Shown: piece by piece, positions 9,905 to 35,845 of the stretch
How the letters are laid out: each line of letters starts with the position of its first letter
Numbering within the stretch: the first letter of the stretch is position 1
IMG/VR virus record: IMGVR_UViG_3300042453_005404
Location: 124,001 to 188,000 of that record
Length of the DNA stretch: 64,000 nucleotides
Reading direction: 5' to 3' (one strand)
Notes under the pieces: generated by a model
What the model was told of the DNA's origin: nothing
Database searches by the model: none
Seen by the model: only the letters and a program-made list of their open reading frames with translations
Translations under genes and position numbers: made by a program

Positions 9905-10576
9905 TCAAGTTGTTGAGCCAACGAAAGCATTTATTGTGATAAATGGGTTTTGGTTATCAAGGTAATCAAACACTGACTTAAAGAAGTCTGGGTTATCTAA
10001 ATCATTGAGTTTTAAGTTTATTGATTTAATTATTTTTTTTAGGAAGCTGTTGAACACACGATTGTTGCCACCAATTATGTCATAACCGTTTTGATCTTTT
10101 CTTTTGAGAAGGATAACGGGTTCTGTGGAAGAAGTGTTGCTTGACAAAATACGTTCAACTTTGTCGAGGTATCCATGTTTATCTTTTGATCTAGCGGCAA
10201 AGTGTGGATTAAGGCCAAGATATTTTTTAACAAAGAATTCTTTTTTTATGGAAGACAAGTCATTCCAATGAAGTTTGATTTGTTTGGCTTGTTTACTTTC
10301 CCAAGAAGTGTTGATCCATTCAGATTCTCTTTGTTGTTCGAACTCACGAATTTTTTTGATTGCATCTTCAAGGGATGGATTTTTTAGCAACACATTATTT
10401 GTTAGTTCTTGAACTTGTTGACCTATGTTTGGATCAAATATTATTTCGTGTTGTTTTTCTTGGGAGTACATATCACGAAAAACGTGATCAGGTAAATGAT
10501 TATAAACTTGACGCATTACTTTTTCAAATGCTTTGGTTCTTGATTCTGATATAAATAAAATATTATAAAGTTTCAT
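9905..10576 (-). CDS. tagged protein with ParB/Srx-like C-terminal domain
   Basis: MKLYNILF tag; EPVILL...YDIIGGNNRV. Confidence 0.6.
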   Translation of the reverse strand: MKLYNILFISESRTKAFEKVMRQVYNHLPDHVFRDMYSQEKQHEIIFDPNIGQQVQELTNNVLLKNPSLEDAIKKIREFEQQRESEWINTSWESKQAKQIKLHWNDLSSIKKEFFVKKYLGLNPHFAARSKDKHGYLDKVERILSSNTSSTEPVILLKRKDQNGYDIIGGNNRVFNSFLKKIIKSINLKLNDLDNPDFFKSVFDYLDNQNPFITINAFVGSTT

Positions 10577-10714
10577 TTTTTATGTTATTACTAAGATAAC
10601 TAGCTGTTACAGCAACTTATTTAGACCCCCCGCAACTCGCAAAGACTTTTTTTCTTGGAAGTGTTTGTTTGGGTTTGAAAAATTTTGGGGAGAAAAAAAT
10701 TTCTGGGAAAGTTT

Positions 10715-11353
10715 TTAGTCTTGATCTTTTAGGGCTTGTCTTAGTGCTGCACTTCTTGGTTGTTTATATTTTTCACGTTGTTCCCAGCCATGCAAACGAC
10801 GAGCCCGTAGTTTAATGTTTGAGATGTTACCGCCCCAGAAAGCGGACCCAATGTGTTTTATTTCTGGATGTTTGGTTAATGATTTCCAAACGTTTTTAGC
10901 TAGTGTAGATGTTTCTCCTCCCCAAGCTTGGTTGTTAACAACGATTCCTTTATAGTTGGTTGCGATATATTTGAGAAGGTGTAGGTACATAGCTTTGCCC
11001 AATCCTTCTCCACGAAATCTGCGATCACTACCGGACATATTTATTCCCCAAGCAGTTACTTCGTCTGGTTTGTTGGATATTTGTTTACGTAGTTTATCGA
11101 AATCATTCCAAGCATTTGGAGAAAGCAGATAGTAAGCTTCCCTCCCGTAGAGGACTGCATCGATTTCCTCGTCGCCGGATGGACGGGTTGTGTTGAGACT
11201 ATCTGCGTTCAAACTGGCCACATTACCGAGTTGGGGATGGTTTGCATAAACCCAAACTTGTTTTCTATTTTCACCGAGCGAGGTATCTTCGCTGATGGAA
11301 AACTCGATATCTTCGATTGAGTGTTCTTCAAATAGCAGAGTGTATAGTTTCAT
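10715..11353 (-). CDS. tagged GNAT-like acetyltransferase
   Basis: MKLYTLLFEE; FRGEGLGKAMY (motif A); TSxxAKNVW. Confidence 0.65.
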   Translation of the reverse strand: MKLYTLLFEEHSIEDIEFSISEDTSLGENRKQVWVYANHPQLGNVASLNADSLNTTRPSGDEEIDAVLYGREAYYLLSPNAWNDFDKLRKQISNKPDEVTAWGINMSGSDRRFRGEGLGKAMYLHLLKYIATNYKGIVVNNQAWGGETSTLAKNVWKSLTKHPEIKHIGSAFWGGNISNIKLRARRLHGWEQREKYKQPRSAALRQALKDQD

Positions 11354-11396
11354 GGGGTGTTATGAAGCTAATTAGTTTTGTTTTTCTGGAAAGTTT

Positions 11397-12056
11397 TTAG
11401 TCTTGATCTTTCAGAGCTTGTCTTAGTGCAGCACTTCTTGGTTGTTTATATTTTTGTCGTCGTTCCCAGCCATGCAAACGTTTGGCACGTAGGTTAATAT
11501 TTGAGATACTACCGCCCCAGAAAGCATATCCTACATGTTTTACTTCTGGATGTTTGGTTAAGGACTTCCAAACGTTTTTAGCTAAGATTGAGGTTGCACC
11601 TTCGCCGCCCCAAGCTTGGTTGCTAACAAGAATACCGTTATAGGTATTGGCGAGATATTTGAGAAGGTGGAGGTACATAGCTTTACCCAATCCTTCATCA
11701 CGGAAACGTTGAGAGTTCCAAGAATGTTGGACGCCCCAAAGTGTTACATTGTTTGGTTTGTTAGATATTTGTTTACGTAGTTTATCGAAGTCATTCCAAG
11801 CATTTGGTTCAAGGGTTAAAGCATCGTCGTCATTGTTGAAGTAGTTTGGGTTATAGAGAGCTTGTGTATCATCTACTTCGTGTGGGTGTTTTGTACTGAG
11901 AGGAATAGCGCATACGAATCCCACTTCACCTAGCTCTGGGTGATTGGCTGTAATCCAAACTTGTTTTTGGTTTTCACCGAGCGAGGTATCTTCTTTGGTG
12001 GAGATATCGATATCTTCAACTGAATGTTCTTCAAATATCAGAGCATATAGTTTCAT
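11397..12056 (-). CDS. tagged GNAT-like acetyltransferase (tandem paralog)
   Basis: MKLYALIFEE; FRDEGLGKAMY; ends near-identical to the 10715 gene. Confidence 0.65.
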   Translation of the reverse strand: MKLYALIFEEHSVEDIDISTKEDTSLGENQKQVWITANHPELGEVGFVCAIPLSTKHPHEVDDTQALYNPNYFNNDDDALTLEPNAWNDFDKLRKQISNKPNNVTLWGVQHSWNSQRFRDEGLGKAMYLHLLKYLANTYNGILVSNQAWGGEGATSILAKNVWKSLTKHPEVKHVGYAFWGGSISNINLRAKRLHGWERRQKYKQPRSAALRQALKDQD

Positions 12057-12069
12057 GAGATGTTGGTTG

Positions 12070-12075
12070 TAATTA
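12070..12075. promoter_or_regulatory. palindromic TAATTA putative late promoter between divergent tagged genes
   Basis: 13 nt from the minus-strand ATG (12056) and 11 nt from the plus-strand ATG (12087). Confidence 0.5.
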
Positions 12076-12086
12076 TACCATGTAGC

Positions 12087-12518
12087 ATGAAACTATACCA
12101 TTTGATATACGAACAAACGGACAAACGCAAAGTATCGCTTGCTGTGTTAACGTATCAAGGCAAGGTATTGATTGTAAAGCGTTCTAAAGATTCTTATTCT
12201 CATGCTGGGAAGTGGGGATTTCCCGGTGGAGGCATAGACCGTGGTGAAACGGCTTTAAAAGCCGTTATACGGGAGTGTGAAGAAGAGATAGGGGTAAGAC
12301 CTATAAGAGTTAAAAAGCTGGCACAGAATGAACGTATAACATGGTTTGTTGGCGAGTTGCCATATGATCCGTTGGAGTGTATTGATTTAGATTATAGCGA
12401 GCATGATGAATGGATGTTGGTTGATGAGGTGAGTATGAATGAATATGAGATGGTTGAGGGGATGATGGAGATAATAGTTAAGGTATTGAGTGGAGAAGAA
12501 GAAGATGAAGTTAAGTGA
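12087..12518 (+). CDS. tagged Nudix hydrolase
   Basis: MKLYHLIYE; Nudix box GGGIDRGETALKAVIRECEEEIG; EH.EW. Confidence 0.9.
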   Translation: MKLYHLIYEQTDKRKVSLAVLTYQGKVLIVKRSKDSYSHAGKWGFPGGGIDRGETALKAVIRECEEEIGVRPIRVKKLAQNERITWFVGELPYDPLECIDLDYSEHDEWMLVDEVSMNEYEMVEGMMEIIVKVLSGEEEDEVK

Positions 12519-12957
12519 GATATTGTTTGAGGTTGAGCAGCCACCAAAACCAAAACAAGAGGATATGCAGGATGCTTTGGAGATGGTACGAGAGAGTTAT
12601 CCAGAAGAGATGGAAGATAAAGAGTTAGAAGATTTTGATTTAGAATACCTTGGATTGCTTTCTGTTGCCGATATAGGGCATTATGCGGATTTATCTTCAT
12701 GGATGGAAGAGTTTGATGAAGACGACGTAGAAGGCATGAAAAGTTTTAGGGGCGAGGAGTGGTTTAATCGTATGGAGAATTTTGCTAAGAACGACACTAT
12801 TCCACTGGAGAATTTTGCTAAGAACGACACTATTCCACCGATTATTGTTGTTGAGGGTAAAACTTTTACTGATGTTGGAGATGGCCGAGGCAGAGTAACA
12901 TATGCCAACTGGAAAAATATTCCATTGCATGTATACAAGCTAAAGGTAAAGCAATGA
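12505..12957 (+). CDS. tagged acidic ParB/Srx-like protein
   Basis: MKLSEILFE; IPPIIVV...GDGRGRV. Confidence 0.55.
   Translation: MKLSEILFEVEQPPKPKQEDMQDALEMVRESYPEEMEDKELEDFDLEYLGLLSVADIGHYADLSSWMEEFDEDDVEGMKSFRGEEWFNRMENFAKNDTIPLENFAKNDTIPPIIVVEGKTFTDVGDGRGRVTYANWKNIPLHVYKLKVKQ
12773..12838 (+). repeat. exact 33-nt in-frame tandem duplication
   Basis: TGGAGAATTTTGCTAAGAACGACACTATTCCAC x2. Confidence 0.95.
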
Positions 12958-13964
12958 AGTTGTTTGAGATATTGTTTGAAACAGCGGAAGAGTATTATCA
13001 ATCTAGTTTGAGAACTTCTGGCAGATTAAACAAAGAGTTAGCCGCACAAGATTTTTCTCGTTATAAACGTCGAGGAGTTCAATATGTTGAATATAACCCT
13101 GAGACATTTACCAAAGAAGGTGTATCGGAAACAAGTGATCCAAACGATATTGGTGGTATCGACAAAGTTTCTTCTCCAGCATATTCAAAACAAAAAGTTA
13201 TCATAGATTTAAAAAACAACATTATTCTTATGAGGTCTGGATTACCTGAGCATGATCCTTTAATAACGTTTCAGTTGCGAGAACTTTTAAGTGCGATTCC
13301 AGAACTTGCAACATATCAAGTAAAAAGATTTGTTCCAACCAAAGATCCTTTTGCTTCTGACAAAGAACTTTCATATGGAATGACGGTTCAAGACTTTTTA
13401 AGTGGCAAGCAAGAGAAGTCTGGGAGATACCCTCGTTATAAGAAGGGCGAGGAGTTATATGATGAATTCAAGTTTGAAGTCTTTAAGGATTTAACAGAGT
13501 TTGATTGGTATCATGCAACGAGAAAGTCAAGTTATGAAAAAATTAAGGCTGAAGGATTTTTAAGACCATCGAAAGATTTTGGAGCTGGGCAGCAGCAACG
13601 GCATGGATGGACTCAGTTTAACTTTGACTTACAGAATGCTGTTTATTTAACTCATGACATTGAAAGAGCTAGAGATATAGCGAACGTGTTGGTTGATAGA
13701 TATGAAGAGGATGCAGTTGTTTTAAAAGTTTCTGGTAAGGCATTAAGTGATGTATCCAAGGTTGTGGTTGATGAGGATATATTGAGGGATGAATATACAG
13801 ATGAGATTTATCCCAGAGAAGCACAAGGTATACCAGAATATGTTATTTCAATAACAAGTGAGAAGATAGCAGGGCTGGGTTACAAGTCAAGAATATCTAA
13901 AGAATTTATTGATGTGGCAGAAACAATAAAGTTTGAGAAGCCAGAGGAAGATAATGAGTCATGA
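12954..13964 (+). CDS. tagged putative ADP-ribosyltransferase (H-Y type fold)
   Basis: MKLFEILFE; WYHAT...IKAEGFLRPS...VYLTHD...VVLKV. Confidence 0.55.
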   Translation: MKLFEILFETAEEYYQSSLRTSGRLNKELAAQDFSRYKRRGVQYVEYNPETFTKEGVSETSDPNDIGGIDKVSSPAYSKQKVIIDLKNNIILMRSGLPEHDPLITFQLRELLSAIPELATYQVKRFVPTKDPFASDKELSYGMTVQDFLSGKQEKSGRYPRYKKGEELYDEFKFEVFKDLTEFDWYHATRKSSYEKIKAEGFLRPSKDFGAGQQQRHGWTQFNFDLQNAVYLTHDIERARDIANVLVDRYEEDAVVLKVSGKALSDVSKVVVDEDILRDEYTDEIYPREAQGIPEYVISITSEKIAGLGYKSRISKEFIDVAETIKFEKPEEDNES

Positions 13965-14572
13965 AGTTAAGTGAGATATTGTTTAACGAGGTTGCTGTTC
14001 CTTTTTCTGAGATAGGAAAAAGTGAGATGGCATTAAAGTTAATCAAAAACGATGACATGATTTTGTTCATACTATATCGTCCTTCGGTGTTAACGAAATA
14101 TTTTCAAGATTGGGAATCAACTGATGGATTAACTGTTGGAATGATGAACATTGTTCTTTCTGAGGATAGCAACAAGATTTACGAGGTTAAAGCAGCGGCA
14201 GCGGAACAAGGTTATGGACCAACGTTGTATGACATTGTTATGAGTTATATTTCTCCAAAGTATCTTATGGCAGACCGGAAAGAAGTTTCTGATGCAGCAA
14301 GAAATGTTTGGAGATTTATGTATGACAACCGCAAAGCAGAATATGATATGTTAACAGTTCCAGAAGAAGGTAAATGGAAAACAAGGGATGGGGAAGACAT
14401 ACCTTTTTTAAACCATGCTTATCGTCTTAAGAAAAAGTTATCGATATATTCCACATTGGTTTTAAGGGACAAACAGTTTTTTGCTAACGAGAGTGATAGG
14501 AACAAGCGAGAACAAATGTTAACAACACTGGAAGAAGATGCTTGGACATATTTCAGAGACAGGATGCAATGA
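13961..14572 (+). CDS. tagged GNAT-like protein
   Basis: MKLSEILFNE; AEQGYGPTLYD; DR..VSDAARNVW. Confidence 0.55.
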   Translation: MKLSEILFNEVAVPFSEIGKSEMALKLIKNDDMILFILYRPSVLTKYFQDWESTDGLTVGMMNIVLSEDSNKIYEVKAAAAEQGYGPTLYDIVMSYISPKYLMADRKEVSDAARNVWRFMYDNRKAEYDMLTVPEEGKWKTRDGEDIPFLNHAYRLKKKLSIYSTLVLRDKQFFANESDRNKREQMLTTLEEDAWTYFRDRMQ

Positions 14573-14574
14573 GC

Positions 14575-15228
14575 TTATAATCCCATTATCTCTGCGCCAG
14601 CTTCTGACAGTTCTAGAACGTCACCAGCTTCACCGATTGTACCAACGAAAAGCATTGTGAGTGGTTTTAAGCTCCATTCTTCATGAGTTTTTGCTGCGTC
14701 TGGAACGCAACCTTGAAACTGTTGTTTGATATCTGGGGCTAGTGCAGATGGAGGAAAATTATGACCGAATCCACGTTTTTCAAGTCTTGGTATTTCTTGT
14801 GGATGATTTTTCTTGAGCCACTTTTGCATATTGAACTTGACGCCGTATTTTTTTGGTGGATTTTTTGGACAGTTTGGTAGATTGTCTTTTACTGGTTTTA
14901 TTTCTTTTTCTTTTTTTTCTTTTGTTGCATAGATGTAGTAGTAAGTGTCACCATAATCTCTGATGGCATCTCTTGCATCTTCTATATCTGCAGCAAGAGA
15001 TATTCTTTCGGTAAAGTCATCTTCGATTGTGTTTCCATCTTTATCGATAAATGGTGCTGATGGAACTCTTGGGGTGAACTTAAACGTTTTGCCGAGATAT
15101 CCACGAGATAGATGGAAATGAGCAAAGTGTTGTTGCAGTTCATCTATTGTAGTTTTTTTACCAGTAAGATTTGGTTGCCGAAATCTTAAATCTAATGCAT
15201 TTTCGAATATTATGCTGTATAGTTTCAA
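14575..15228 (-). CDS. tagged putative ART-fold protein
   Basis: TTG start gives MKLYSIIFE; FHLS, FTPRVP, EDxxTERISLA, VPDAxxTHEEW. Confidence 0.45.
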   Translation of the reverse strand: MKLYSIIFENALDLRFRQPNLTGKKTTIDELQQHFAHFHLSRGYLGKTFKFTPRVPSAPFIDKDGNTIEDDFTERISLAADIEDARDAIRDYGDTYYYIYATKEKKEKEIKPVKDNLPNCPKNPPKKYGVKFNMQKWLKKNHPQEIPRLEKRGFGHNFPPSALAPDIKQQFQGCVPDAAKTHEEWSLKPLTMLFVGTIGEAGDVLELSEAGAEIMGL

Positions 15229-15230: not shown

Positions 15231-16004
15231 TCAACCTTCGATTCCTTTGTATTGAGATCTGTACAGTTTAAAAGCTTGTGATTTTATTTTTTCTTTAAGT
15301 TCTTCTCTGCTGGCTCCGTTGTTTGTGCCTATTGAATTCAGGATTTCGTCACCATGGTCGAGCAATGGTCCAGCTTTAAAGGGACCATGATACAACCAAG
15401 CATTTGCTGTGCCGAGGACAGCATTGACTGGTTCTCCTGACGAAACAGGCAATCTACAATCGTCGCTTTCATCTTCTGGGGTTAATGGCTTTAAAGGTTG
15501 TCCATTTTCGTCTTCATTTTTACCTGTGCGGTTGGGCCATGATCCATCAAACCGAAACCAATATTTTGGGTAACGAGTATTGTGTTGATAATAGTTGTCT
15601 AACTCAACTTTGGTCCAATCGCTGCCATTTTCGATTTTTGCCCAAGCTTTTTTAGCTGAGTTGCTTGTTGAGCTTAGTCTATCGCTTGTGATAGGTTTTT
15701 GGTAATAATCAGAAATCAACGCATACATCACGCTTCCTGCGCCGGGAAACTGTGGACTTCTTACTATGTAATTGGTTTCAACAGCTTTTTTGCAATCATT
15801 TTCATGCACAGTCTTAACACCACAATATGCACACAACCAATCATTAGGGCTACCCATTAATCCGTTCTCAACCCAAGCTTTGAAATTTTCTACATGCAGT
15901 AAAGCGAACCCTTTTTCGGTTTCACCTTGCCAATCAACCATTGCATATTCTGGTGGTTGATAGCTATTGAATTTTTCTTCGAACAAGATCGAATACAGTT
16001 TCAT
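15231..16004 (-). CDS. tagged GNAT-like protein (paralog set B)
   Basis: MKLYSILFEE; PGAGSVMY; ITSDR..STSNSAKKAW. Confidence 0.55.
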   Translation of the reverse strand: MKLYSILFEEKFNSYQPPEYAMVDWQGETEKGFALLHVENFKAWVENGLMGSPNDWLCAYCGVKTVHENDCKKAVETNYIVRSPQFPGAGSVMYALISDYYQKPITSDRLSSTSNSAKKAWAKIENGSDWTKVELDNYYQHNTRYPKYWFRFDGSWPNRTGKNEDENGQPLKPLTPEDESDDCRLPVSSGEPVNAVLGTANAWLYHGPFKAGPLLDHGDEILNSIGTNNGASREELKEKIKSQAFKLYRSQYKGIEG

Positions 16005-16006: not shown

Positions 16007-16861
16007 TCAACCTTCGATTCCTTTATAATATTTGGTAAACAAATTGTTGGATTTGTTTTTGATTTCTTGTTCAAGTTGATACCGTTCTAGTCCAGACTCG
16101 TTTGCTATTGCTATCAAAACTTCTTGGCCATGGGATAACAATTCTTCTGCGTTAAGCGGGCCGTTATAAATCCAAGCGTTTGCTGAACCAAGTTTTTTGT
16201 TGATCAAAGAAGGGATGGAATCTGGCAACACGCAATCGTCTTGTTTGTTGTTGGGTGTTTTTGGTTCTGTTGTAGGAGACACTAACCTGTTTGGCCACAG
16301 TCCTTTGATGTCGAAATATTTTTTGTGTCCAGAATGATGGCCATACGGGCCGCTCGCACCGTAGTTGTCACCGTAGTTGTCTAACTCGACTTTAGTCCAA
16401 TCACTGCTTGATTCAATTTTTGCCCAAGCTTTTTTAGCTGAGTTGCTTGTTGAGCTTTGTCTGTCGCTTGTGATTGGTGCTTTGTAGTAATCGGAAATCA
16501 AGGCATACATGGCAGCTCCTGCGCCGGGAAACTGTGGACTTCTTACCATGTAACTAACTTCTACTGCTCCACCACAATCCCTTGAATGACGTTCATTTGA
16601 TCCAGCATATGCACAAATCCAACTTTCGAAAGGCAGCATTCCTTCAGCAGCCCATTTTCGAAAATGTCCAACATGGAACAAAGCGAACCCTTGTTCTCTG
16701 TCATTCCACCAATCAATCATTGCAAAAGCTGGAGGACGATATTCTTTGACTGTTCCCACGACTGAAATATGTTTGAAAGCACTTTCTGGTGCTTTCATTT
16801 CTTCTGGACTTAACAGTTTGAGTTGTTCTTCTTGTTCAAACAAGATCTTGTAAAGTTTCAT
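16007..16861 (-). CDS. tagged GNAT-like protein (paralog set B)
   Basis: MKLYKILFEQ; identical DNA blocks shared with the 15231 gene. Confidence 0.55.
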   Translation of the reverse strand: MKLYKILFEQEEQLKLLSPEEMKAPESAFKHISVVGTVKEYRPPAFAMIDWWNDREQGFALFHVGHFRKWAAEGMLPFESWICAYAGSNERHSRDCGGAVEVSYMVRSPQFPGAGAAMYALISDYYKAPITSDRQSSTSNSAKKAWAKIESSSDWTKVELDNYGDNYGASGPYGHHSGHKKYFDIKGLWPNRLVSPTTEPKTPNNKQDDCVLPDSIPSLINKKLGSANAWIYNGPLNAEELLSHGQEVLIAIANESGLERYQLEQEIKNKSNNLFTKYYKGIEG

Positions 16862-17676
16862 CTTGGGGTATCCGATCCTTTGTAGCGTGCGTTCCAAAGT
16901 CTGTCAGCTATATCAATCAAAAGGTTTTTTACATCTGTATTTTCTGGATTATTCATTGGATCTTTGGCTTTTATCATTATGTCTTCTGCTTGTTTAATCA
17001 ATGGTGCAGCTTTTAATGGACCTTTATATCGATATGCATCTGCGGTGCCAACGATTTTAGCCATTTCTTCTGGTTCAGAAATGCTTCCACCTTTTGCTGG
17101 CAATGGGCAGTCATCTATTTCTTGTGGAGTTTTTGGTTCTGTTTCATTTTTGATTCTGCTTATAATGTTACCAAAGAAACCACCACTTTGTTTTCTGCGT
17201 GGTTTAGCTATGCGTTTTGGATATGTGCCTTGAATATCCATATATATTTTGCCTTTATCCGTAGCTGCATAGTTGTCCAAGCCTTCTCCAACTTTTACCC
17301 AATCTGTGCTTTGTTCTATTTTGGACCAAGTTTCTCTTGCTGCAACAGAGCTACTATGATAACGATCACTTGTTAGCGGAGCTCCAAAGTAATCGCTTGT
17401 TAGAGCATAAAGTGTCAAACCTGCTCCTCTCCATTCTTTGTTTCCTAAAGCCATTGAAACTTGCATTGCTTCAAGGCAATCTTTTTCACTTTCTGAACAT
17501 GTGATCATGCTAGCCACAACTTTAGAGCTATCATTTTTATCATTCAAAAATCTTAACAAAGAATCGGTGTGAGCTAAAATCAAAGTTTTATCAAACACAA
17601 ACAAAGCAAACTCTGGTGCTGTGTATGATATAAAGCTTTTTTCTTCTTTTTCGAACAATAACGGATATAGCTTCAT
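16858..17676 (-). CDS. tagged GNAT-like protein (paralog set B)
   Basis: MKLYPLLFE; RGAGLTLY; LTSDR..SSVAARETW. Confidence 0.55.
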   Translation of the reverse strand: MKLYPLLFEKEEKSFISYTAPEFALFVFDKTLILAHTDSLLRFLNDKNDSSKVVASMITCSESEKDCLEAMQVSMALGNKEWRGAGLTLYALTSDYFGAPLTSDRYHSSSVAARETWSKIEQSTDWVKVGEGLDNYAATDKGKIYMDIQGTYPKRIAKPRRKQSGGFFGNIISRIKNETEPKTPQEIDDCPLPAKGGSISEPEEMAKIVGTADAYRYKGPLKAAPLIKQAEDIMIKAKDPMNNPENTDVKNLLIDIADRLWNARYKGSDTPR

Positions 17677-18527
17677 GGTTTCTTCATGGTTTCTTCAATA
17701 AAGTCTGTACTGTTTTTGATTGTTTCAAAACGTTTTATCAACATGGGTTTGATTGTGTTGTTAACCAAACTTTTCCATTCCTCAATTTCGGCATTTTCAA
17801 TTTTAGCATTTTCCTTCATTGTTTTGGCAACTTCTTCTCTAGCAGCGTCAACCGTTTTAATTAAAGAGTCAACACTTTCTACTTCGTTGAATTGATCCAC
17901 AGCTTTTTGTAAGCTATCGAGGCTATAAGTTTGTGCAGCTGGGGATGAACCCTTGCCGGGATACATACTTCTAAGTTCTCCCACTTTGCTGTTAAATTGT
18001 TGATCTGTTTTTCGGGCACCTTGAGCACGAAAAATCAAAGAACCACCGGGATCAATACGTACAACACCGTTATCTGTTGCTAATAGGTTGGAAGTGTTTC
18101 CAATATCCCAGTTTGCCAACAGCATGTCAACAAACATTCCTTGGGTTAAGTTATTTCTTGAGCCCAAAGAACTTCTAGAAAATCGATAACCTTTTACTTT
18201 TTTAGTTGCCAACCCAATTCTTTTTCTTTCTTCGCTTCCAACAACCTGAATATCTTCTGGTATTGATATACCAAACAGCTTGTAAATTTGATATGCCAAA
18301 TATTCAACTCCTATTTGAAGATTAAATTCTTGTTGTTCTAAGTTAGATTCATTCCCCCATCCTCCATATTTCAAGTAATAACTTCCATTCTTGAACTTGC
18401 AAGTTTGTAATGAATGGGATGATGCAGAGCTACAAACCTCTAGGTCTTGTAGCTCTGTTTCGCTAATCCCTTCTAAAATTTGTTGCTTGACAATTGTTTT
18501 TAATGCGTTAAAAAGTTTTGTTCTCAC
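17673..18527 (-). CDS. tagged HipA/PI3K-like kinase-fold protein
   Basis: LKTIVKQQILE; YYLK, EYLAYQIY, DMLLANWD..N..N, RIDPGGSL. Confidence 0.65.
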   Translation of the reverse strand: MRTKLFNALKTIVKQQILEGISETELQDLEVCSSASSHSLQTCKFKNGSYYLKYGGWGNESNLEQQEFNLQIGVEYLAYQIYKLFGISIPEDIQVVGSEERKRIGLATKKVKGYRFSRSSLGSRNNLTQGMFVDMLLANWDIGNTSNLLATDNGVVRIDPGGSLIFRAQGARKTDQQFNSKVGELRSMYPGKGSSPAAQTYSLDSLQKAVDQFNEVESVDSLIKTVDAAREEVAKTMKENAKIENAEIEEWKSLVNNTIKPMLIKRFETIKNSTDFIEETMKKP

Positions 18528-18965: not shown

Positions 18966-19709
18966 ATGAAAAAACATTTAAAGGCAATCATACGTTCTCT
19001 TGTTTTAGAAGCTATGAGAGAGCTAGCTCCCGGTCAAAAACCCAAGATGATCTTTCTTGCCGGTGGTTCTGGAAGCGGTAAATCCACTACCTTAAGAGCT
19101 TTAGACGTTCGAAGCCGTGGATTTCAAGTTATCGACCCCGACGAAGCCTTTGAAGAAGGCTTGCGCCAACATAATCTTGGTTTAGACATTGCAAAAGCTG
19201 AAAAAGAGTTTTTTGATATCAACAACAGATATAAAGCTGCACAAGAAGCTGGTGATAGAAAAGCAATGAAAGAACTGCAACCTGAGTATTATCGGTTGCG
19301 TGCGAATTCTAAACTTCGTGGTCGTTTGTTTATGTCAGCTTTGCATGGAGCGAAAGAAAAAGCGTTAGGTTTGGCACAAGAGCAACATGATTTCATTGTT
19401 GATGGTACAGGTGGCAACTACAACAAAATTGCAACCTTAAAAAAAGAGTATGAAGAACTTGGTTATGTCACCGCAATGATTTTTGTTCATGTTGAGCTAG
19501 ATACCAGTTTGAAACGAAACCGTGAACGTGGGGAAAGTGGTGGCAGAAAATTGCGTCGCAGCACAGTAAAACAAAGCTGGGAAAACGTTCACAAAAACGA
19601 ACAACCTTTTAGAAAACTGTTTGGTGAAAACTTTTTTTACATTGATGCAGAAAACTTGGAGCAATCGTTACGTGAAGTTTCTGGTAAGATTACCAGTTTC
19701 ATGAGGTAG
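18966..19709 (+). CDS. tagged zeta-toxin-like P-loop kinase
   Basis: LKAIIRSLVLE; FLAGGSGSGKST, IDPD, IVDGTG, RNRER.R. Confidence 0.75.
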   Translation: MKKHLKAIIRSLVLEAMRELAPGQKPKMIFLAGGSGSGKSTTLRALDVRSRGFQVIDPDEAFEEGLRQHNLGLDIAKAEKEFFDINNRYKAAQEAGDRKAMKELQPEYYRLRANSKLRGRLFMSALHGAKEKALGLAQEQHDFIVDGTGGNYNKIATLKKEYEELGYVTAMIFVHVELDTSLKRNRERGESGGRKLRRSTVKQSWENVHKNEQPFRKLFGENFFYIDAENLEQSLREVSGKITSFMR

Positions 19710-19718: not shown

Positions 19719-20282
19719 TTATATCTCACCTAGACGCTTTGCACGGTTAGCTTTGTAGTTGTCAACCAAGTCACCAACATCGGTTGTCATGACACGTTTG
19801 AATGTGTCCCAGCTTGTTTCATTTTCTGGTTGTTCACCGCAATGTTTGGCTATAAGACGTTTGCGTGCGGCATTCTGTGCGTTGCGTGGAAGCTGCAACA
19901 CAAACTTTTCAATTGTTGCTGGATCGCATGGATCTCTTGGGCTTATGCTTTCAATTTCTTTTTCTACTGCTTGCTGAATGCTTTGTTCTATAGCACCTTT
20001 TGGTTCTAATTTTTTGTATCGATCACGATTGAAATATAAAGCTTGGCTCAATACCGCTTTTCGAAGTTTGGCAAACTGTGAATTAGATTTTATGTCATTG
20101 TCCGCACCCGCAAATGCATCAACTAGTTTTTCTTCAGAACGTAGATTTCCGTAGGGTGTTATAATGTTTTTTTCTACCCAACGTTTTAGTTTTCGATCTT
20201 TTGGATCATTGCGATTTAGATTATCTATAATTGTGCGTACTTCCAAATTTGCTGTTTCAAAAAGTATGTTGTAAAGTTTCAT
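19719..20282 (-). CDS. tagged hypothetical protein
   Basis: MKLYNILFE. Confidence 0.7.
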   Translation of the reverse strand: MKLYNILFETANLEVRTIIDNLNRNDPKDRKLKRWVEKNIITPYGNLRSEEKLVDAFAGADNDIKSNSQFAKLRKAVLSQALYFNRDRYKKLEPKGAIEQSIQQAVEKEIESISPRDPCDPATIEKFVLQLPRNAQNAARKRLIAKHCGEQPENETSWDTFKRVMTTDVGDLVDNYKANRAKRLGEI

Positions 20283-20337: not shown

Positions 20338-21261
20338 ATGAATTCATCACTTAAATCTCTTAAAACAATCATTCATTCTGTCTTACTTGAAGGTCAACTT
20401 GAAAAAGAAAAGCTTACAATACAAGATATTGTCAACAAGCTTAAGAATCGTGTGCTTATATTTTTTGATACCGAAACAACAGGATTCAGTTCAAAAACTC
20501 CTTATTCATTGATTACAGAAATCGGCGCAATCGCAATCGATACAAGCACAGGTGAAGAGCTTGGCCGATATTCGATGAAAAGCAAGTTAACACAATCGGT
20601 TGAAGATCGTAGAAAAAAACAACGTGAAGAAATTGCAGCCGGAACAAGAAAATCTAATAGTATGACTATTGATGACATTTTGAAAATGACTGCTTACGAA
20701 GAAGGTGACATTCCTTTCGAAGAAGAAGGAAAAGTTTTGGCTGGGTTTTCTGAGTTCGTCAGTCAGTACCGATCTCTAGGTCCAATCATGGTTGCACACA
20801 ACGCACGCTTTGATATGCGGCAAATAAACGACGCTTTAAAACTTCGTCACGAAATGCCGTTTCTTCCTAAATACAGTGTGTTGGATACCAAAGTACTTGT
20901 TGAAAAATATTTGCAATCATTGCTTATTGGTTTGGAAAATCTTAGAGGAACTGATCCAGAAGTTGATCGACTGTTTAATGAGCTACGTTCTACAAATCGC
21001 TTTACTAGCAGACTTGGCTCATTGGGCACTGCATTCGAAGTTGAAACAAAGCATTGGCACAGTGCAATAGCAGATACACTGCAACTGTCTGGTATCTTAG
21101 CTAAAATCCTTGATTTCTTTGAACGCCGAGGAGACGAGCCTTACAATATTGGCAGAGATATTCGTAGTGGCCTTGCAAAACGTTTACCATCAGGTGAGAT
21201 TGAATACAAAAAAACAAGACAGAAAAAGGGAGCAATTAAGCCACCTGTCAATCAACCTTAG
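20338..21261 (+). CDS. tagged DEDDh 3'-5' exonuclease (DnaQ-like)
   Basis: FDTETTG, AHNARFD, HSAIADT; LKTIIHSVLLE N-terminus. Confidence 0.85.
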   Translation: MNSSLKSLKTIIHSVLLEGQLEKEKLTIQDIVNKLKNRVLIFFDTETTGFSSKTPYSLITEIGAIAIDTSTGEELGRYSMKSKLTQSVEDRRKKQREEIAAGTRKSNSMTIDDILKMTAYEEGDIPFEEEGKVLAGFSEFVSQYRSLGPIMVAHNARFDMRQINDALKLRHEMPFLPKYSVLDTKVLVEKYLQSLLIGLENLRGTDPEVDRLFNELRSTNRFTSRLGSLGTAFEVETKHWHSAIADTLQLSGILAKILDFFERRGDEPYNIGRDIRSGLAKRLPSGEIEYKKTRQKKGAIKPPVNQP

Positions 21262-27540: not shown

Positions 27541-28230
27541 TTATTTTTTTATTTCTAAAATAGCAAGTAAAAGCTTGCTTTTTATTTCGTCTGGTTTGTT
27601 TGGGTCAGCGATGAAATAAATTCCTTTATCATATTTGACAGAGCCAATCGAAAATGTTTCTTTTTCGTGCTTAAAGTCTTCGTCAGCAGTTCCAACAAGT
27701 CGATTTGGATTTCCAAAAAAATTGTTGTTTTTTTTCAAGCTGGCTTTCAATATAACGTAAACTGGTTTACGTTCGCTTGATTCTGTTTTGATAATGGTAG
27801 GAAACATGGATGGGTCAGTGGTCCAACCTTGAATTTCAGAATTCATTGTTGGTTCAATTACTCCTGCTGGCAATTTGCCAGTTGGTTTGGATAAATCAAT
27901 GTTAAAAGTTGATTTTCCTGTTTCAGCATCTAAAAACAATAAACGATATACATTTATTCTGTCACCCTTAAAAGGATCAAGCATGGCACTATACATGTTT
28001 TTTTGTTTTAACGAAAACAAACTTGGAGCAATTTTGCTCAAGTCTGATTTGTCGTTAAAAGAAGCATAACGTGCCAAAGCTTCAAAAGCTTCTTCTTCTT
28101 CGAGTGTTGGTTCTTCTTTGTTGTTTTTCTTTATATCATTGCGTTGATAGTCAAACATATACTTGCCAAACAAAGCGTCTTTGCCTTGTTCTGGTTCTTC
28201 AAACAAAATAGAGCATAATGTTATTTTCAT
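27541..28230 (-). CDS. tagged putative ADP-ribosyltransferase (R-S-E-like)
   Basis: LCSILFEE; VYR...GWTTD...HEKE. Confidence 0.45.
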   Translation of the reverse strand: MKITLCSILFEEPEQGKDALFGKYMFDYQRNDIKKNNKEEPTLEEEEAFEALARYASFNDKSDLSKIAPSLFSLKQKNMYSAMLDPFKGDRINVYRLLFLDAETGKSTFNIDLSKPTGKLPAGVIEPTMNSEIQGWTTDPSMFPTIIKTESSERKPVYVILKASLKKNNNFFGNPNRLVGTADEDFKHEKETFSIGSVKYDKGIYFIADPNKPDEIKSKLLLAILEIKK

Positions 28231-31861: not shown

Positions 31862-32251
31862 CTAAACTTGATAGGTTATAACTTCATCCGGTAATACCAG
31901 TTTTTCCATTTCTGGAAACGAGCTCACAATCAGCCGCACGTCAACCAGTATATTTTTGGGTTCTACTGTTGCTACCTTGACATATATTGGTGGGCCTTCA
32001 AAAAAGCTGTCGATTACCATTTTCCAATCTGGCAGCCATGACAAAAGTTGTTTTTGTGGTTCTGATTCGATATTTTGAACATATCGAAATAGCGTTTTTG
32101 GTTTACTGGGTCTATATGCTTCAAGCTCTTTGATAACTGCCGGAGGTGGCAATCCTCTTGGTGCGTACTCCGTCCAATGTTGTAGCCATTTTTTAGTTTC
32201 TTCCGATAACGGGTTATCTTGTACGTCAAACAATATGGATTCTAACAGCAT
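31862..32251 (-). CDS. tagged putative ADP-ribosyltransferase (R-S-E-like) inside the tRNA cluster
   Basis: MLLESILFD; TLFRY...LLSW...ILVD...DEVI. Confidence 0.5.
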   Translation of the reverse strand: MLLESILFDVQDNPLSEETKKWLQHWTEYAPRGLPPPAVIKELEAYRPSKPKTLFRYVQNIESEPQKQLLSWLPDWKMVIDSFFEGPPIYVKVATVEPKNILVDVRLIVSSFPEMEKLVLPDEVITYQV

Positions 32252-32305
32252 ACAGCTATATATAGTATCTGTAATATACATTACAAACGAAATTCGAAAA
32301 AGAAG

Positions 32306-32947: not shown

Positions 32948-32951
32948 AGAG

Positions 32952-33639: not shown

Positions 33640-33777
33640 TTCGTTTATGTTCTTAGTATTCCAGAAATATATTCAAGCGTAAAGGTATTAATCATTTTTC
33701 TTTTCCAAGCGAAAAGAATAGGGCAATCGATAGAACAATGTTAACAATCAACAACTGAATCCAGCTCATATTCTTAG

Positions 33778-34614
33778 TTAGTTTAGCTTGAGATATTCCC
33801 AAGCAGTAGCTGCACGTTTCATCAAGCGTTTTTTGTTTTCTGGTGTCAATCGTTTTTGAACTTGTGGTCTGAGATATATTGTTAAAAGCTTATCTACAAA
33901 CTCTTGTGGAGTTTCTCCAACGTTATCATTCCATTCTTCGGTAGTTTCTGTTTTTAAAAGATCGTTATATAGTTCGCTCATTGCTTGTTGGTAGTAAGCA
34001 TTGAGTTCCAAAGGATCATTAGCATACTTGTCACGATCTCTTACTTTTCCAGCTTCTTTTTCTGATATTTTTCGTTTTGCTCTAGCGACAAGATATTCTG
34101 GATTTATTCTTCTGAAGTCTAGGGTATGAGTAAACTCATGAACAAAAGAAGAGCGGTAGTTGGAGCTTTCAAGTAGATCAGCCAAGTTGTTAGCAAACCA
34201 TTTATTGTAGGCTTTTACAGGCTTATTAGCTGCTTGTGGAGCATCGATGTATAGTTTGATGCGTAGCTGAGTTATCTTGCCTGTATTTGGCTCTATATTC
34301 CGATCAGCACTTGCTTTGATTGTTGGTTTGACATTGTTAAGTTCATGGTCAAGAAACTCGATATACAAATCGGATATTTCTGGAATTTGTTGTTTTTTTG
34401 GCAAGTTTGTTTCCATATGGAAACCTATAAATCTTCCATCGTTATCTGTGTAAAACTTTTCCGCAAACTTGCTTGGATCTTTTTTCAGCTTACGAATAAA
34501 CGCTTCAATGTTTTCGAATGCTTCATTTGCGATATGGAGTTTATCCATATCTTCTTCTCTGGATTCTGCAAGCTTGAGAAAAAGCTTTGCTTCTAACAAG
34601 TCTTGCAGTTTCAT
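33778..34614 (-). CDS. tagged zincin-like metallopeptidase
   Basis: MKLQDLLE; HEFTH; YxxDPxELNA. Confidence 0.65.
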   Translation of the reverse strand: MKLQDLLEAKLFLKLAESREEDMDKLHIANEAFENIEAFIRKLKKDPSKFAEKFYTDNDGRFIGFHMETNLPKKQQIPEISDLYIEFLDHELNNVKPTIKASADRNIEPNTGKITQLRIKLYIDAPQAANKPVKAYNKWFANNLADLLESSNYRSSFVHEFTHTLDFRRINPEYLVARAKRKISEKEAGKVRDRDKYANDPLELNAYYQQAMSELYNDLLKTETTEEWNDNVGETPQEFVDKLLTIYLRPQVQKRLTPENKKRLMKRAATAWEYLKLN

Positions 34615-34615
34615 T

Positions 34616-35845
34616 TCACTTCTTTTCGGACTTAGCTAGTTTAGCTAGTTTTTCGAACAGTTTAGTAACAATGATTATGTCGATGTGGCTGCGGTCATAG
34701 CTGTATGGAACGTAGCTTTGTTCTGGTTCAAGAGGCTTGTGTTTTTTTAGCTCACGATCTTCACGGGGGAAAGGATAAGCTTTCATGATTTGACCCATGC
34801 CATTGCCATATGTTTCATCTGGCATTTTCTTGTCAAGATCTTTTGGAACGTAGTCTTCTAACTCACGTTTGGTTTCTTTTTTTGCCATTGTTTTAGGTTC
34901 CTTTGCTTCTCCCAATGAATAACCGGGATTGCCTTTCTTATAGATATTCACGTTGCCGGGAACGTGCTTAACAGGATGAGCAACAACTCCTTGACTGCCA
35001 GCATGAATCGGTACATCATCATCTGAATCCAAATCTTTTACATAATCTTGTTGACCAAACTCTTTTTTAATCCAATCAACAGGTTTAACAAGGTGATTAA
35101 ACACTTCATCTCTATTGGTATGTCCTTTATCAACTTGTGTTGTTTCTTTCCAACGATTAAGTGTTTGATTACGTTTTTTTGTAAGGTTTAACTCATTACC
35201 TTCGGGTTCTGTTGGACTATACATGCTGGCTTGTACACCAATGTCTCCCGGTTCAAGTGTTAGCATTCCTTCGCCGGGAGTGTTAACAGGTCCATGTCCA
35301 AAGGGTATACCACGCTCGCCTTCTCTTGGGGAAGGAAGAAGATGTGGAATATTGTAACGTTCTTCTTCGGGTTCTTCTCGGTCTAAATCTTCATCTTCTG
35401 GGACATGTTCAACAGGATCAGACAAAGTATTCATCGCCGGGAATCCCGGCATGTCACGATAGAGAATCGCTGCCGCATCACGTTCGTTTACGAAGTCTTG
35501 ATATTCTGGGTTATAAAAGTACGAAGGTTCAAGGTCTTTTTCTCGATCCAAGATTTCGTCTCTAACAGTATCCTCTCCGGGCAATAAATGAGGACGGCTA
35601 TCGTAAACTTCAGAACTTTCAAGGGATTCATATTCGCTATCTTTTGGATCACGTTGAGCATCTATAGCAGGTCTAAAAGAAGGGTTTGGAGGTAAGTCTG
35701 CATCTGGGTCTTGTAATCCCGGCCATACTTGTGAGTTGGCTAGTTGATATCGATTACCGAAACCGTAAGGGCCACCTTGAAACGTTCCTGCTCCAGAAAA
35801 ATCTCCAGTGTTTTCATTTGCAAAAAGTATGTTTTTAAGCTTCAT
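34616..35845 (-). CDS. tagged acidic Pro-rich, probably disordered protein
   Basis: MKLKNILFANE. Confidence 0.7.
   Translation of the reverse strand: MKLKNILFANENTGDFSGAGTFQGGPYGFGNRYQLANSQVWPGLQDPDADLPPNPSFRPAIDAQRDPKDSEYESLESSEVYDSRPHLLPGEDTVRDEILDREKDLEPSYFYNPEYQDFVNERDAAAILYRDMPGFPAMNTLSDPVEHVPEDEDLDREEPEEERYNIPHLLPSPREGERGIPFGHGPVNTPGEGMLTLEPGDIGVQASMYSPTEPEGNELNLTKKRNQTLNRWKETTQVDKGHTNRDEVFNHLVKPVDWIKKEFGQQDYVKDLDSDDDVPIHAGSQGVVAHPVKHVPGNVNIYKKGNPGYSLGEAKEPKTMAKKETKRELEDYVPKDLDKKMPDETYGNGMGQIMKAYPFPREDRELKKHKPLEPEQSYVPYSYDRSHIDIIIVTKLFEKLAKLAKSEKK

Follow-up and report, generated by a model that had tools for sequence, protein, structure and literature searches.

Short N-terminal leaders of three classes, candidate capsid-targeting sequences, head some twenty mostly unrelated proteins in a large T4-like phage

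In the 64,000-nt window analysed here, part of a 260,466 bp T4-like contig from a large uncultivated phage, about 20–21 mostly unrelated proteins begin with N-terminal leaders of three classes, and at least 27 tagged proteins occur across the ~100 kb seen of the phage genome. Class A (MKLYxILFE) heads 13 genes and one variant in the window, class B (MR/KxTVxQLKxLIxE) heads three, and class C, a looser LKxII...LxE helix, heads four. The best explanation, which we regard as reasonably probable, is that these leaders are T4-type capsid-targeting sequences (CTSs) in greatly expanded form. An earlier note on this DNA had described two tags; these are real, but the second splits into classes B and C.

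The class A tags are real, beyond chance. In a six-frame translation, a loose regular expression for the motif gave 13 matches, all directly after a start codon. To train a position-specific scoring matrix (PSSM), 57 tag instances were taken from IMG/VR contigs outside this genome; among the 127,996 positions in the window, the top 12 were all preceded by ATG or TTG (12/12) and head ORFs of 149–408 aa. Sixteen class A genes had been listed previously, of which 13 are strong and one (27541) is a variant, but two (31862 and 33778) are weak. The strong genes and the variant are:

9905..10576, minus strand: 223 aa, MKLYNILFISE, with the Glu displaced by two residues; PSSM 17.1 at the start codon; no Pfam match, and ParB-like as a candidate label.
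10715..11353, minus strand: 212 aa, MKLYTLLFE; PSSM 21.2; paralogue of 11397 (67% identity outside the tag); GNAT-like motif, by eye only.
11397..12056, minus strand: 219 aa, MKLYALIFE; identified by regular expression, BLAST and PSSM.
12087..12518, plus strand: 143 aa, MKLYHLIYE; NUDIX hydrolase body (Pfam NUDIX 1.4e-18); tagged orthologues in L016, L002 and L018.
12505..12957, plus strand: 150 aa, MKLSEILFE; PSSM 24.2; tagged orthologue in L016.
12954..13964, plus strand: 336 aa, MKLFEILFE; putative ADP-ribosyltransferase-like body; 16 metagenomic homologues, most retaining the tag.
13961..14572, plus strand: 203 aa, MKLSEILFNE; PSSM 19.9; tagged homologues in L033 and L053.
14575..15228, minus strand: 217 aa, TTG start, (M)KLYSIIFE; PSSM 23.3, preceding codon TTG; tagged orthologues in L002 and L018 (61% identity).
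15231..16004, minus strand: 257 aa, MKLYSILFE; first of three paralogues (15231/16007/16858); 18 homologues, in which the tag hardly changes but the linker varies.
16007..16861, minus strand: 284 aa, MKLYKILFE; paralogue of 15231, found by PSSM.
16858..17676, minus strand: 272 aa, MKLYPLLFE; paralogue of 15231, found by PSSM.
19719..20282, minus strand: 187 aa, MKLYNILFE; PSSM 25.8, the window maximum.
27541..28230, minus strand: 229 aa, variant MKITLCSILFE; PSSM 9.1, offset from the start; homologue in L037 with the canonical tag MKLVDILFE.
34616..35845, minus strand: 409 aa, MKLKNILFANE; PSSM 13.6; body acidic and rich in proline, probably disordered; no Pfam match.

A regular expression for the second tag matched within the first 15 residues of 6 of the 56 genes and at none of 14,810 internal positions, in an N-terminal test that is partly circular because the expression was derived from the tested genes themselves. 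From the second-tag genes originally listed, 48043, 49681 and 50264 belong to class B and 17673, 18966, 20338 and 21265 to class C, but 50728 is weak. The class B and C genes are:

17673..18527, minus strand: class C, 284 aa, GTG start, leader ending LKTIVKQQILE before G; N-terminal regular-expression match; no Pfam match or PDB sequence match, and a kinase-like motif as a candidate label.
18966..19709, plus strand: class C, 247 aa, leader ending LKAIIRSLVLE before A; zeta-toxin-type P-loop kinase body (Pfam Zeta_toxin 5.3e-15); the homologue in L098/L150 also has an N-terminal amphipathic helix, ending in IxE.
20338..21261, plus strand: class C, 307 aa, leader ending LKTIIHSVLLE before G; DEDDh exonuclease body (Pfam RNase_T 6.8e-9); LKTIIKSVITEG is kept in the L006 homologue (49%).
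21265..23061, minus strand: class C, 598 aa, leader ending LKAIIKQILLTE; LRV/HEAT repeats (Pfam LRV 6.4e-16); the N-terminus of the L006 homologue contains LLEYYLLVEG.
48043..48549, plus strand: class B, 168 aa, MRLTLGQLKRIIKE; class B DNA pattern match, as L210.
49681..50220, plus strand: class B, 179 aa, MRITVKQLKRLIKE; class B DNA pattern and regular expression.
50264..50716, plus strand: class B, 150 aa, MRITVKQLKQLIRE; class B DNA pattern.

Three genes are retained as weak candidates:

31862..32254, minus strand: MLLESILFD, weak class A candidate with an uncertain start and an adjacent tRNA gene; absent from the class A PSSM matches in the window.
33778..34614, minus strand: 278 aa, MKLQDLLE, weak class A candidate, one residue short; HExxH motif in the body and no Pfam match.
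50728..51795, plus strand: 355 aa, MNLHLLRLIFKE, weak class C candidate, missed by the second-tag regular expression in the first 15 residues.

Tag copies had also been claimed at the C-termini of the 44861 and 26840 proteins; there the resemblance is vague, and the claim found no support.

The leader is a separable module, as judged by AlphaFold (AF2), linker indels and profile–profile alignment. In the AF2 models it is unstructured and lies outside the folded body (pLDDT <50 at residues 1–17 of the 15231 protein and 1–8 of the 12954 protein), and the linker directly behind the tag carries indels between orthologues of the 15231 family. Leaders are the sole similarity between cargo families in hhalign alignments, in keeping with the earlier description of unrelated bodies, but BLAST of the tagged proteins after N-terminal trimming left two paralogue groups, 10715/11397 and 15231/16007/16858, and no others. 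The description of the bodies as enzyme-like is borne out by Pfam for the Nudix hydrolase (12087), the zeta-like kinase (18966) and the DEDDh exonuclease (RNase_T, 20338), but among the other tagged proteins of the window Pfam verified only the LRV/HEAT repeats at 21265; ten of the remainder, re-scanned up to E<=5, still gave no match. The 15231 protein (AF2 pLDDT 85.8) gave weak Foldseek matches to GNAT folds (best E 0.14), and its three-member family possibly has a GNAT-like fold. For the 12954 protein (AF2 pLDDT 83.8), BFVD matches included Vibrio phage nt-1 (1.6e-5), Bacillus phage G paralogues, a rifampin ART (0.015) and mycobacteriophage ParB-domain proteins, with weak DarT/ART matches in the PDB; these moderate fold-search matches suggest an ART-like protein. 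ParB, HipA, zincin and NTase are candidate labels taken from short motifs only. On other contigs, Pfam-verified tagged cargo includes Fe/Mn SOD, NUDIX, GNAT, ART-PolyVal, Zeta_toxin, legume lectin and GIY-YIG proteins.

Nearly all leaders terminate in (L/I)xE, the cleavage motif of the T4 prohead protease gp21: class A in L-F-E, class B in I-K/R-E and class C in L-x-E. Position 9 deviates from Glu in four leaders, being shifted or missing at 10576, 13961 and 35845 and Asp at 31862. As a motif, (L/I)xE is short and common, which we counted against the capsid-targeting reading. The head module starts at the end of the window:

62295..64000, plus strand: 5' part of the portal gene (gp20), first gene of the head module (PHROG portal 9e-57).

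Past the window, the portal gene is followed by a 290-aa gene, a Peptidase_S77 prohead protease, a 174-aa protein with a class C leader, a 206-aa gene, a 752-aa scaffold and the gp23 capsid protein, the Pfam assignments (Portal_T4, Peptidase_S77, Gp23) having been made on L019 and L158 and the scaffold ORF read directly; in this phage, then, a class C leader sits between protease and scaffold. Two more leader proteins lie between the capsid and gp13 genes: one, of class B, is basic and 67 aa long, and the other, of class C, has 215 aa and a DxDxT motif (HAD-type) noted on visual inspection. The protease, of the gp21 family, has 46–49% identity with its counterparts in Flavobacterium phage immuto and Microcystis phage Mel-JY01 and matched 2,350 T4-like phage records (tblastn), and the terminase is gp17-like. 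Since each leader class closes with the motif at which the phage's own head protease cuts, capsid loading is the most likely role of the leaders.

The main class A cluster adjoins the DNA polymerase gene, outside the structural module, which counts against the capsid-targeting reading. As had been predicted, the tag is absent from the starts of replication genes: in the window, no leader begins Pol III alpha, primase, the SbcC-like protein, RNA ligase, UvdE or terminase (0 among the replication, repair and packaging genes). The T4-type late promoter TATAAATA was found upstream of none of the tagged genes, at which sigma-70-like sites showed no enrichment; an intergenic CTATATAT motif lies upstream of several class B and C genes and is absent upstream of head genes. 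We also weighed these promoter results against capsid targeting.

In five relatives (L004, L009, L107, L110 and L118), the gene that directly follows the protease, ahead of scaffold and capsid, encodes a class A protein. A small basic protein with a class B leader belongs to the structural module of relatives, and T4-type head or tail genes lie within a few kb of 45 of 105 class B loci. Class A comprises 69 unique ORFs in 38 BLAST clusters and class B 100 proteins in 52 clusters; a class B profile reached 671 representative protein clusters, and for ~87% of the best 150 the match began at residue 1. The leaders were found in no cultured phage, and thus nothing can be transferred from a characterised relative. 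The original proposal of a modular, T4 CTS-like leader draws its support from the S77 protease, the (L/I)xE ends, the placement in head modules of relatives, this breadth and the AlphaFold models.

The shared start might instead be inherited or copied DNA without peptide function, such as a translation-start or recombination cassette or the remnant of an ancestral gene; many tagged genes are indeed adjacent, and the two paralogue groups would fit. Yet the residues are kept though the codons are scrambled: Leu at position 3 of class A uses five different codons, third-base identity between identical leader residues is 0.50, and nucleotide identity is 0.66 inside the tag versus 0.30 upstream and 0.32 downstream. 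Such varied codons and unrelated flanking DNA indicate selection on the peptide, not on the DNA. Moreover, the peptide persists between contigs with portals of only ~35% identity, and the bodies have no detectable similarity. Two or three in-frame internal class B copies, each heading a module, occur in some metagenomic proteins, which fits a signal that resides in the peptide and can act internally, and not a start-site signal. This reading is strongly disfavoured, and we give it very little probability.

If the peptide is what matters, the leaders could be substrates of the prohead protease, or of another protease, without being packaging signals; they would be removable propeptides that inactivate potentially toxic enzymes (kinase, ART, nuclease) or time their processing in the producing cell. 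The terminal protease motif would agree with this, as would the zeta-type kinase, ART and other cargo types that are toxic in other contexts, but a nine-residue unstructured leader outside the fold is an unlikely inhibitor of such different enzymes, non-enzymatic head-module proteins bear the same leader, and T4 gp21 matures proteins within the assembled prohead (PMC9026906). We consider it improbable, and equally so that the leaders dock proteins to some other phage-made partner or compartment, for example a GroEL-type chaperonin or a replication compartment, in place of the prohead core. The phage does encode a chaperonin, and the class A cluster is near replication genes; however, docking of this kind would leave the terminal (L/I)xE and the S77 protease unexplained, leaders head genes within the head modules of many relatives, and no compartment genes were seen.

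The proposed capsid targeting by short peptides has several counterparts. A ~10-residue cargo-loading peptide of encapsulins brings unrelated enzymes into an HK97-fold shell, as proposed for the leaders here, but encapsulin peptides are usually C-terminal and uncleaved, and their shell serves the cell as a nanocompartment. The closest parallel is T4, which has the same head machinery as this phage (gp20 portal, gp21-family protease, scaffold and gp23 capsid) and whose internal-protein CTS was reportedly treated by Mullaney and Black in 1996. The T4 CTS has ~10 residues; targeting requires residues 4 and 7, and processing residues 8 and 10 (PMC9026906). With the T4 CTS as quoted in PMC8442874, class A has M-K-x-Y (positions 1, 2 and 4) and the hydrophobic-x-E end in common, too few residues for statistics. 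Likewise, the CTS of IPI, IPII and IPIII and the propeptides of Alt and gp24 in T4 are short N-terminal leaders on otherwise unrelated proteins and end in the gp21 motif hydrophobic-x-Glu, and the exchange of diverse internal proteins behind a conserved CTS, already described in T-even phages, makes the recruitment of new cargo behind a conserved leader a known principle (PMC3012670, PMC9026906). The present leaders differ in sequence from those of T4 and fall into three or more classes. T4 has a handful of tagged genes, against about 21 in this 64-kb window and at least 27 seen in the genome. Many of the cargo proteins here are enzyme-like and of 150–600 aa, whereas those of T4 are small and basic; and the leaders, known from sequence alone, are family-wide in an uncultivated clade, on hundreds of protein clusters.

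Polyvalent proteins (Iyer et al. 2017, PMC5512222) overlap in domain repertoire, a class A protein of L133 having a Pfam ART-PolyVal domain and the BFVD matches of 12954 including ParB-domain proteins, and share the proposed logic of several effectors delivered with the DNA, but they are giant polypeptides with a MuF or portal-fusion anchor, whereas the proteins here are separate, single-bodied and equipped with their own leaders. The metagenomic proteins with repeated class B leaders may be intermediate forms towards them. In the giant phages phiKZ, 201phi2-1 and SPN3US, a prohead protease related to gp21 processes many proteins of the head interior, among them ejection and inner-body proteins. 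Targeting is the inferred function of their propeptides, but these mostly exceed 100 residues, are cut at (A/S/G)xE and have no short common leader (PMC5694885, PMC10052503), in contrast to the highly stereotyped leaders of 9–20 residues here. An N-terminal segment of P1 DarB is enough to direct this large anti-restriction enzyme, or a reporter, to the capsid interior, although the Dar proteins have no common consensus or known shared leader family and P1 uses a different head assembly system (PMC9024508).

Under the capsid-targeting reading, we infer core binding, cleavage, retention in the virion, ejection and any role in the host. The short leader would bind each protein to the prohead scaffolding core during head assembly, and the capsid shell would close round the core; the gp21-family protease would then cut behind the Glu that closes the terminal (L/I)-x-E, the leader would exit, and the mature enzyme would remain in the head alongside the DNA and enter the next cell at infection. 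Whether a head has room for ~30 different proteins depends on their copy numbers, a point counted against this reading. If it is true, the cargo of this phage would include a Nudix hydrolase, a zeta-type kinase, a DEDDh exonuclease, an ART-like protein, a possible GNAT-fold family, and repeat and disordered proteins.

Genes in the window, named here by their window coordinates, carry three classes of short N-terminal leader: class A, MKLYxILFE; class B, M(R/K)xTVxQLKxLIxE; and class C, a looser LKxII...LxE helix. Searching the six-frame translation of the window with a loose regular expression for class A gave 13 matches, each directly 3' of a start codon, and the exact degenerate DNA pattern for this class occurred 3 times in the window compared with 0 in 100 shuffles. 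An independent position matrix, trained on 57 tag instances taken exclusively from other IMG/VR contigs, was scored at 127,996 window positions, and its top 12 scores all fell after ATG or TTG, heading ORFs of 149-408 aa. The earlier note, which had proposed a capsid-loading tag on enzyme-like proteins, listed 16 class A genes; 13 of these are solid, 27541 is a variant for which a homologue elsewhere has the canonical tag, and 31862 and 33778 are weak. The second tag described there is indeed N-terminal-specific (its regular expression matched 6 of 56 genes in the first 15 residues and 0 of 14,810 internal positions, a partly circular comparison, as the expression was derived from the same genes), but it is not one tag and separates into two classes:

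Class B, genes 48043, 49681 and 50264: sharply defined M-(R/K)-x-T-(V/L)-x-Q-L-K-x-(L/I)-I-(K/R)-E
Class C, genes 17673, 18966, 20338 and 21265: looser ..LKxI(I/V)....L.E

The C-terminal copies claimed for genes 44861 and 26840 turned out to be mere resemblances and found no support. Overall, the tags are real, with caveats for a few members and for most of the domain labels given to the tagged proteins; the window has about 21 tagged genes, and the ~100 kb of the genome seen contain at least 27.

The leaders are under selection. Because the Leu at position 3 of class A is encoded by five different codons, identical residues share the third base at a rate of only 0.50, and the flanking DNA is dissimilar (pairwise nucleotide identity 0.66 within the tag, 0.30 immediately upstream and 0.32 immediately downstream), what is conserved in class A, judging from these comparisons, is the peptide and not the DNA. 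On the varied codons and unrelated flanks, a DNA-level cassette was rejected. A secretion signal was also rejected, on inspection, the leaders being too short, acidic and without a hydrophobic core.

The bodies behind the leaders had been described as unrelated, which holds for most of them; BLAST with the N-terminus trimmed recovered only two paralogue groups, 10715/11397 and 15231/16007/16858. When the profiles of two cargo families were aligned with those of tagged proteins from other contigs, the match was confined to the leader. The leaders are modular, and a short N-terminal leader of about 10-20 aa is common to otherwise unrelated proteins, whose orthologues vary by indels directly 3' of the tag. 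Pfam assigned domains to four tagged proteins:

12087: NUDIX
18966: Zeta_toxin
20338: RNase_T/DEDDh
21265: LRV/HEAT repeats

The remaining tagged proteins had no Pfam match, and ten of them re-scanned at E<=5 gave noise alone; phmmer against the PDB returned nothing useful for 17673, 33778, 10715 and 9905, the match of 33778 to protein A being a short helical stretch. Of the enzyme labels first proposed, Nudix, zeta and DEDDh are therefore backed by Pfam and the GNAT- and ART-like labels are plausible for the 15231 family and 12954, respectively, while ParB, HipA, zincin and NTase are motif-level guesses. The family of 15231, 16007 and 16858 has 18 homologues, all metagenomic, and its profile matched no PDB sequence; the AF2 model, which is confident (pLDDT 85.8), gave weak, partial Foldseek matches to the GNAT folds of HAT1, AtaT and Mpr1 (best E 0.14, TM about 0.24), so that a GNAT-like fold is plausible at the level of the model. 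Gene 12954 has 16 homologues with conserved WYHAT, AVYLT and VDED motifs and no Pfam match. Its model (pLDDT 83.8) significantly matched uncharacterised proteins of Vibrio phage nt-1 and Bacillus phage G in BFVD, with rifampin ADP-ribosyltransferase at E 0.015, and DarT weakly in the PDB (E 0.5); on this structural comparison, an ART-like fold is plausible. In the modelled proteins (the 15231 family and 12954), AF2 leaves leader and linker unstructured. The product of 34616 is not an enzyme but an acidic, proline-rich, probably disordered protein.

The window spans positions 124,001-188,000 of a 260,466-bp metagenomic viral contig (JGI 3300042453 Ga0453175_0000013, that is, IMGVR_UViG_3300042453_005404) from a phage that is a large, distant member of the T4 head-assembly lineage. 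Its gp17-like large terminase shows 39% identity to its counterparts in Flavobacterium phage immuto and Microcystis phage Mel-JY01, and other window genes encode a Pol III alpha-type polymerase, primase, SbcC-like nuclease, GroEL-type chaperonin, sigma factor, RNA ligase and UvdE, along with 13 minus-strand tRNAs in two arrays (31285-33034 and 48722-49210; Asn, Lys, Ile, Val, Glu, Tyr, Ser, Pro, Leu x2, Thr x2 and Ala). A T4-type portal is the final gene in the window. The module runs on past the window end: the portal is followed by a 290-aa gene and Peptidase_S77 (the family of gp21, the T4 prohead protease), then by a small insert that resembles a homing endonuclease and by two proteins, of 174 and 206 aa. 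After these come a scaffold-like ORF of 752 aa, the capsid protein Gp23, a DUF6267 protein, gp13 and sheath. Pfam searches of the contig flanks beyond the window (L019 and L158) identified Portal_T4, Peptidase_S77 and Gp23, and tblastn with the prohead protease matched 2,350 T4-like phage records. The phage thus encodes T4-type head machinery, namely a gp21-family protease, T4-type portal, scaffold and gp23. The intact scaffold ORF of 752 aa, Ala/Pro-rich in the middle and acidic in its C-terminal half, has an N-terminus similar to those of the scaffolds of immuto and of another IMG/VR locus, L107.

Several features of these regions are recorded here in their own right. Positions on flank L019 convert to the window as 72227 minus the L019 position; the Peptidase_S77 gene occupies L019:6361-6972 on the minus strand. 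Just past the window end (L019:5801-6972), the C-terminal ~17 residues of the prohead protease (..SDFVERAANEILSLKTK) recur in a 37-aa ORF (..SDLVDRAANEILALRKKS), with a 111-aa ORF in between; at that spot, another sample (L020) has a 269-aa GIY-YIG gene, and the duplicated protease 3' end looks like the product of a homing-endonuclease insertion. The public call for the scaffold gene (L019:2237-4495, minus strand) is a 435-aa product plus spurious opposite-strand ORFs of EEQQ repeats. At the left end of the window, positions 1-9800 have a G+C content of 0.42-0.49, compared with ~0.38-0.40, and hold small tandem paralogue families (4149-4958 and 6531-7202) with GK(L/M)Y starts in common and a Lys/Thr-rich protein of 287 aa (8534-9397); this stretch may have been acquired as an island or may belong to a separate module.

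The earlier note gives (L/I)xE as the cleavage motif of gp21, and all three leader classes close with a hydrophobic-x-Glu that fits it. Class A leaders have (L/I)-(F/Y)-E at residues 7-9 in 10 of 13 cases, with the Glu shifted in the other 3, class B leaders all terminate in I-(K/R)-E, and class C leaders in L-x-E; the leaders thus end in the cleavage motif, although the few with a displaced or missing Glu count against reading them as capsid-targeting sequences (CTSs) of the T4 type. The scaffold itself has SLFE twice, and capsid proteins in relatives begin ME(L/I)NxL(F/L)E. In the T4 CTS, processing depends on residues 8 and 10, and targeting on residues 4 and 7 (PMC9026906). Class A shares with the T4 CTS quoted in PMC8442874 M-K-x-Y at residues 1, 2 and 4 and the hydrophobic-x-E end, a likeness too short for statistics, and classes B and C have no similarity to it.

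Leaders also occur inside head modules. In more distant relatives, whose portals are about 35% identical, the gene that directly follows the protease, ahead of the scaffold and capsid genes, encodes a class A protein of 185 aa. In the studied phage, the 174-aa gene between protease and scaffold starts with a class C helix, and two more leader proteins are encoded between capsid and gp13: a basic class B protein of 67 aa, which is conserved, and a class C protein of 215 aa in which a DxDxT (HAD-type) motif is seen by eye. T4-type head or tail genes were found within a few kb in 45 of 105 class B loci. The hydrophobic-x-Glu ends, the class A gene following the protease in relatives and the class B and C genes in head modules are three independent lines that connect the leaders with prohead assembly. 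The SLFE copies in the scaffold, the capsid N-termini of relatives, the unstructured leaders and linkers, the indels next to the tag and the internal class B copies described below are consistent with this.

These leaders extend well beyond one genome. A survey of IMG/VR with degenerate class A patterns returned the source contig together with many others and, keeping N-terminal ORFs of at least 80 aa, yielded 69 unique proteins in 38 BLAST clusters, with Pfam-verified bodies that include Fe/Mn superoxide dismutase, NUDIX, GNAT, ART-PolyVal, Zeta_toxin, legume lectin, DUF6267 and GIY-YIG. On other viral contigs (L109, L120, L129 and L139), a complete Fe/Mn superoxide dismutase with the class A leader MKLKDILFE adjoins a second tagged gene of 141 aa. 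The class B pattern, which by our own estimate (~39 bits) should turn up no more than a few times by chance, was found at 105 loci (100 unique proteins, 52 clusters, mostly 56-274 aa), and positions that the pattern leaves free are also conserved (K/R at 2, I at 3, A-V-E-E after the Glu). A profile built from the N-terminal 30 residues of 39 class B proteins, searched against 1.84 billion proteins at E<=0.001, retrieved 671 representative clusters, and ~131 of the best 150 aligned from residue 1. Across 596 Gbp of bacterial and archaeal genomes (GTDB), the class B pattern gave only 14 scattered matches, in MAGs of unrelated phyla, which are probably mis-binned phage contigs. In deposited cultured phages, tblastn found no match for a 15231-family class A protein, for the class B protein of 67 aa or for a class B consensus of 20 aa. 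The polymerase gene and two related loci, queried by megablast, likewise had no match among deposited phages. On the contig under study, outside the window (L010:1058-3821), two adjacent proline-rich low-complexity proteins of 225 aa (class A leader) and 241 aa adjoin a 135-aa HExxH protein whose start is class C-like; the 241-aa protein begins MTKYSLYEFLYE, which looks even nearer the T4 CTS pattern.

We consider it likely that the leaders are T4-type CTSs, an interpretation that is unproven but the best available and is partly anticipated in the literature. In outline, the leader would attach a protein to the scaffolding core during prohead formation, the S77 protease would cut after the leader Glu at maturation, the leader would diffuse away, and the mature protein would stay with the DNA and be ejected into the next host; core binding, cleavage, retention and ejection, like the function of the tagged proteins, are what we infer. 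The location of the main class A cluster, which adjoins the polymerase gene, counts against the CTS reading, as do the promoter results that follow. No T4-type late promoters were found upstream of tagged genes in the window, where TATAAATA, of that type, occurs once, inside a gene, and sigma-70-like promoters and terminators in the 9.4-23.2 kb interval were no more numerous than in shuffles. The intergenic CTATATAT motif is real and precedes several class B and C genes, and none was found before head genes. Occurrences of (C)TATATAT at 23071, 29250, 32257, 36158, 39915, 41536, 44827, 47907, 47994 and 50235 are almost exclusively intergenic, lie about 25-50 nt upstream of several starts (39957, 44861, 48043 and 50264), were not found before head genes, and may represent a phage-specific promoter element. 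At 12056-12087, two class A genes are divergent with starts only 30 nt apart, and the promoter region of each must therefore overlap the leader-coding sequence of the other.

Two other peptide-level readings appear improbable, and equally so: that the leader is a removable propeptide without a packaging role, and that it docks the protein to some other phage structure. Far less probable still is a DNA-level or ancestral remnant, given the varied codons and unrelated flanks and the profile-profile alignments that cover the leader alone. The same reading meets a further obstacle in four metagenomic proteins matched by the class B profile (P0117, P0120, P0063 and P0131), single ORFs that hold the class B leader in two or three in-frame copies, each complete with its Met and each at the start of a new module. 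These ORFs could be either polyproteins for cutting apart or fused neighbouring genes, and the internal copies are hard to reconcile with a start-site or DNA-level signal.

The capsid-targeting interpretation can be set beside known systems. In T-even phages, the exchange of diverse internal proteins behind the CTS is established (PMC3012670; PMC9026906), and the CTS may be an evolutionary mechanism to incorporate various proteins (PMC9026906); P1 DarB has an N-terminal packaging signal (PMC9024508). Compared with the T4 CTS, the leaders described here are new and fall into three classes; compared with known systems generally, they head ~21 genes in the window, with cargo that is often large and enzyme-like, and hundreds of protein clusters from phages known from metagenomes alone. 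In polyvalent proteins, many domains are delivered on a single chain (PMC5512222), which has two to fifteen effector domains and often a MuF, portal or peptidase domain, whereas the cargo proteins of the window each have one or no detected domain, and no MuF was seen. Giant phages use long propeptides cut at (A/S/G)xE (PMC5694885), and those of phiKZ and SPN3US inner-body proteins mostly exceed 100 aa; the leaders here, in contrast, are 9-20 aa long and end in (L/I)xE.

It is quite possible, if a little short of probable, that a clade of uncultivated large T4-like phages has made the CTS a general address label, so that the set of carried and injected proteins can be read from sequence. If so, each genome would contribute dozens of enzymes to this set, and the set as a whole would run to many hundreds of protein families, among them ARTs, GNATs, zeta-type kinases, Nudix hydrolases, nucleases, superoxide dismutase and lectins, a catalogue of first-minute effectors of host takeover and counter-defence. 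Proteins injected with phage DNA act ahead of any phage gene expression and are therefore prime candidates for such roles, and they are normally identified solely by virion proteomics of cultured phages. Should the leaders have some other role than loading, one would still have to explain why hundreds of unrelated phage proteins share a conserved, strictly N-terminal peptide. If they are loading signals, the T4 CTS principle would scale from a few small proteins to ~30 diverse enzymes in a single phage, new compact tags would be available to load chosen or foreign proteins into phage heads, and the injected repertoire of uncultivated phages would become searchable by a short motif; the value of the finding would lie in making that repertoire readable from sequence.
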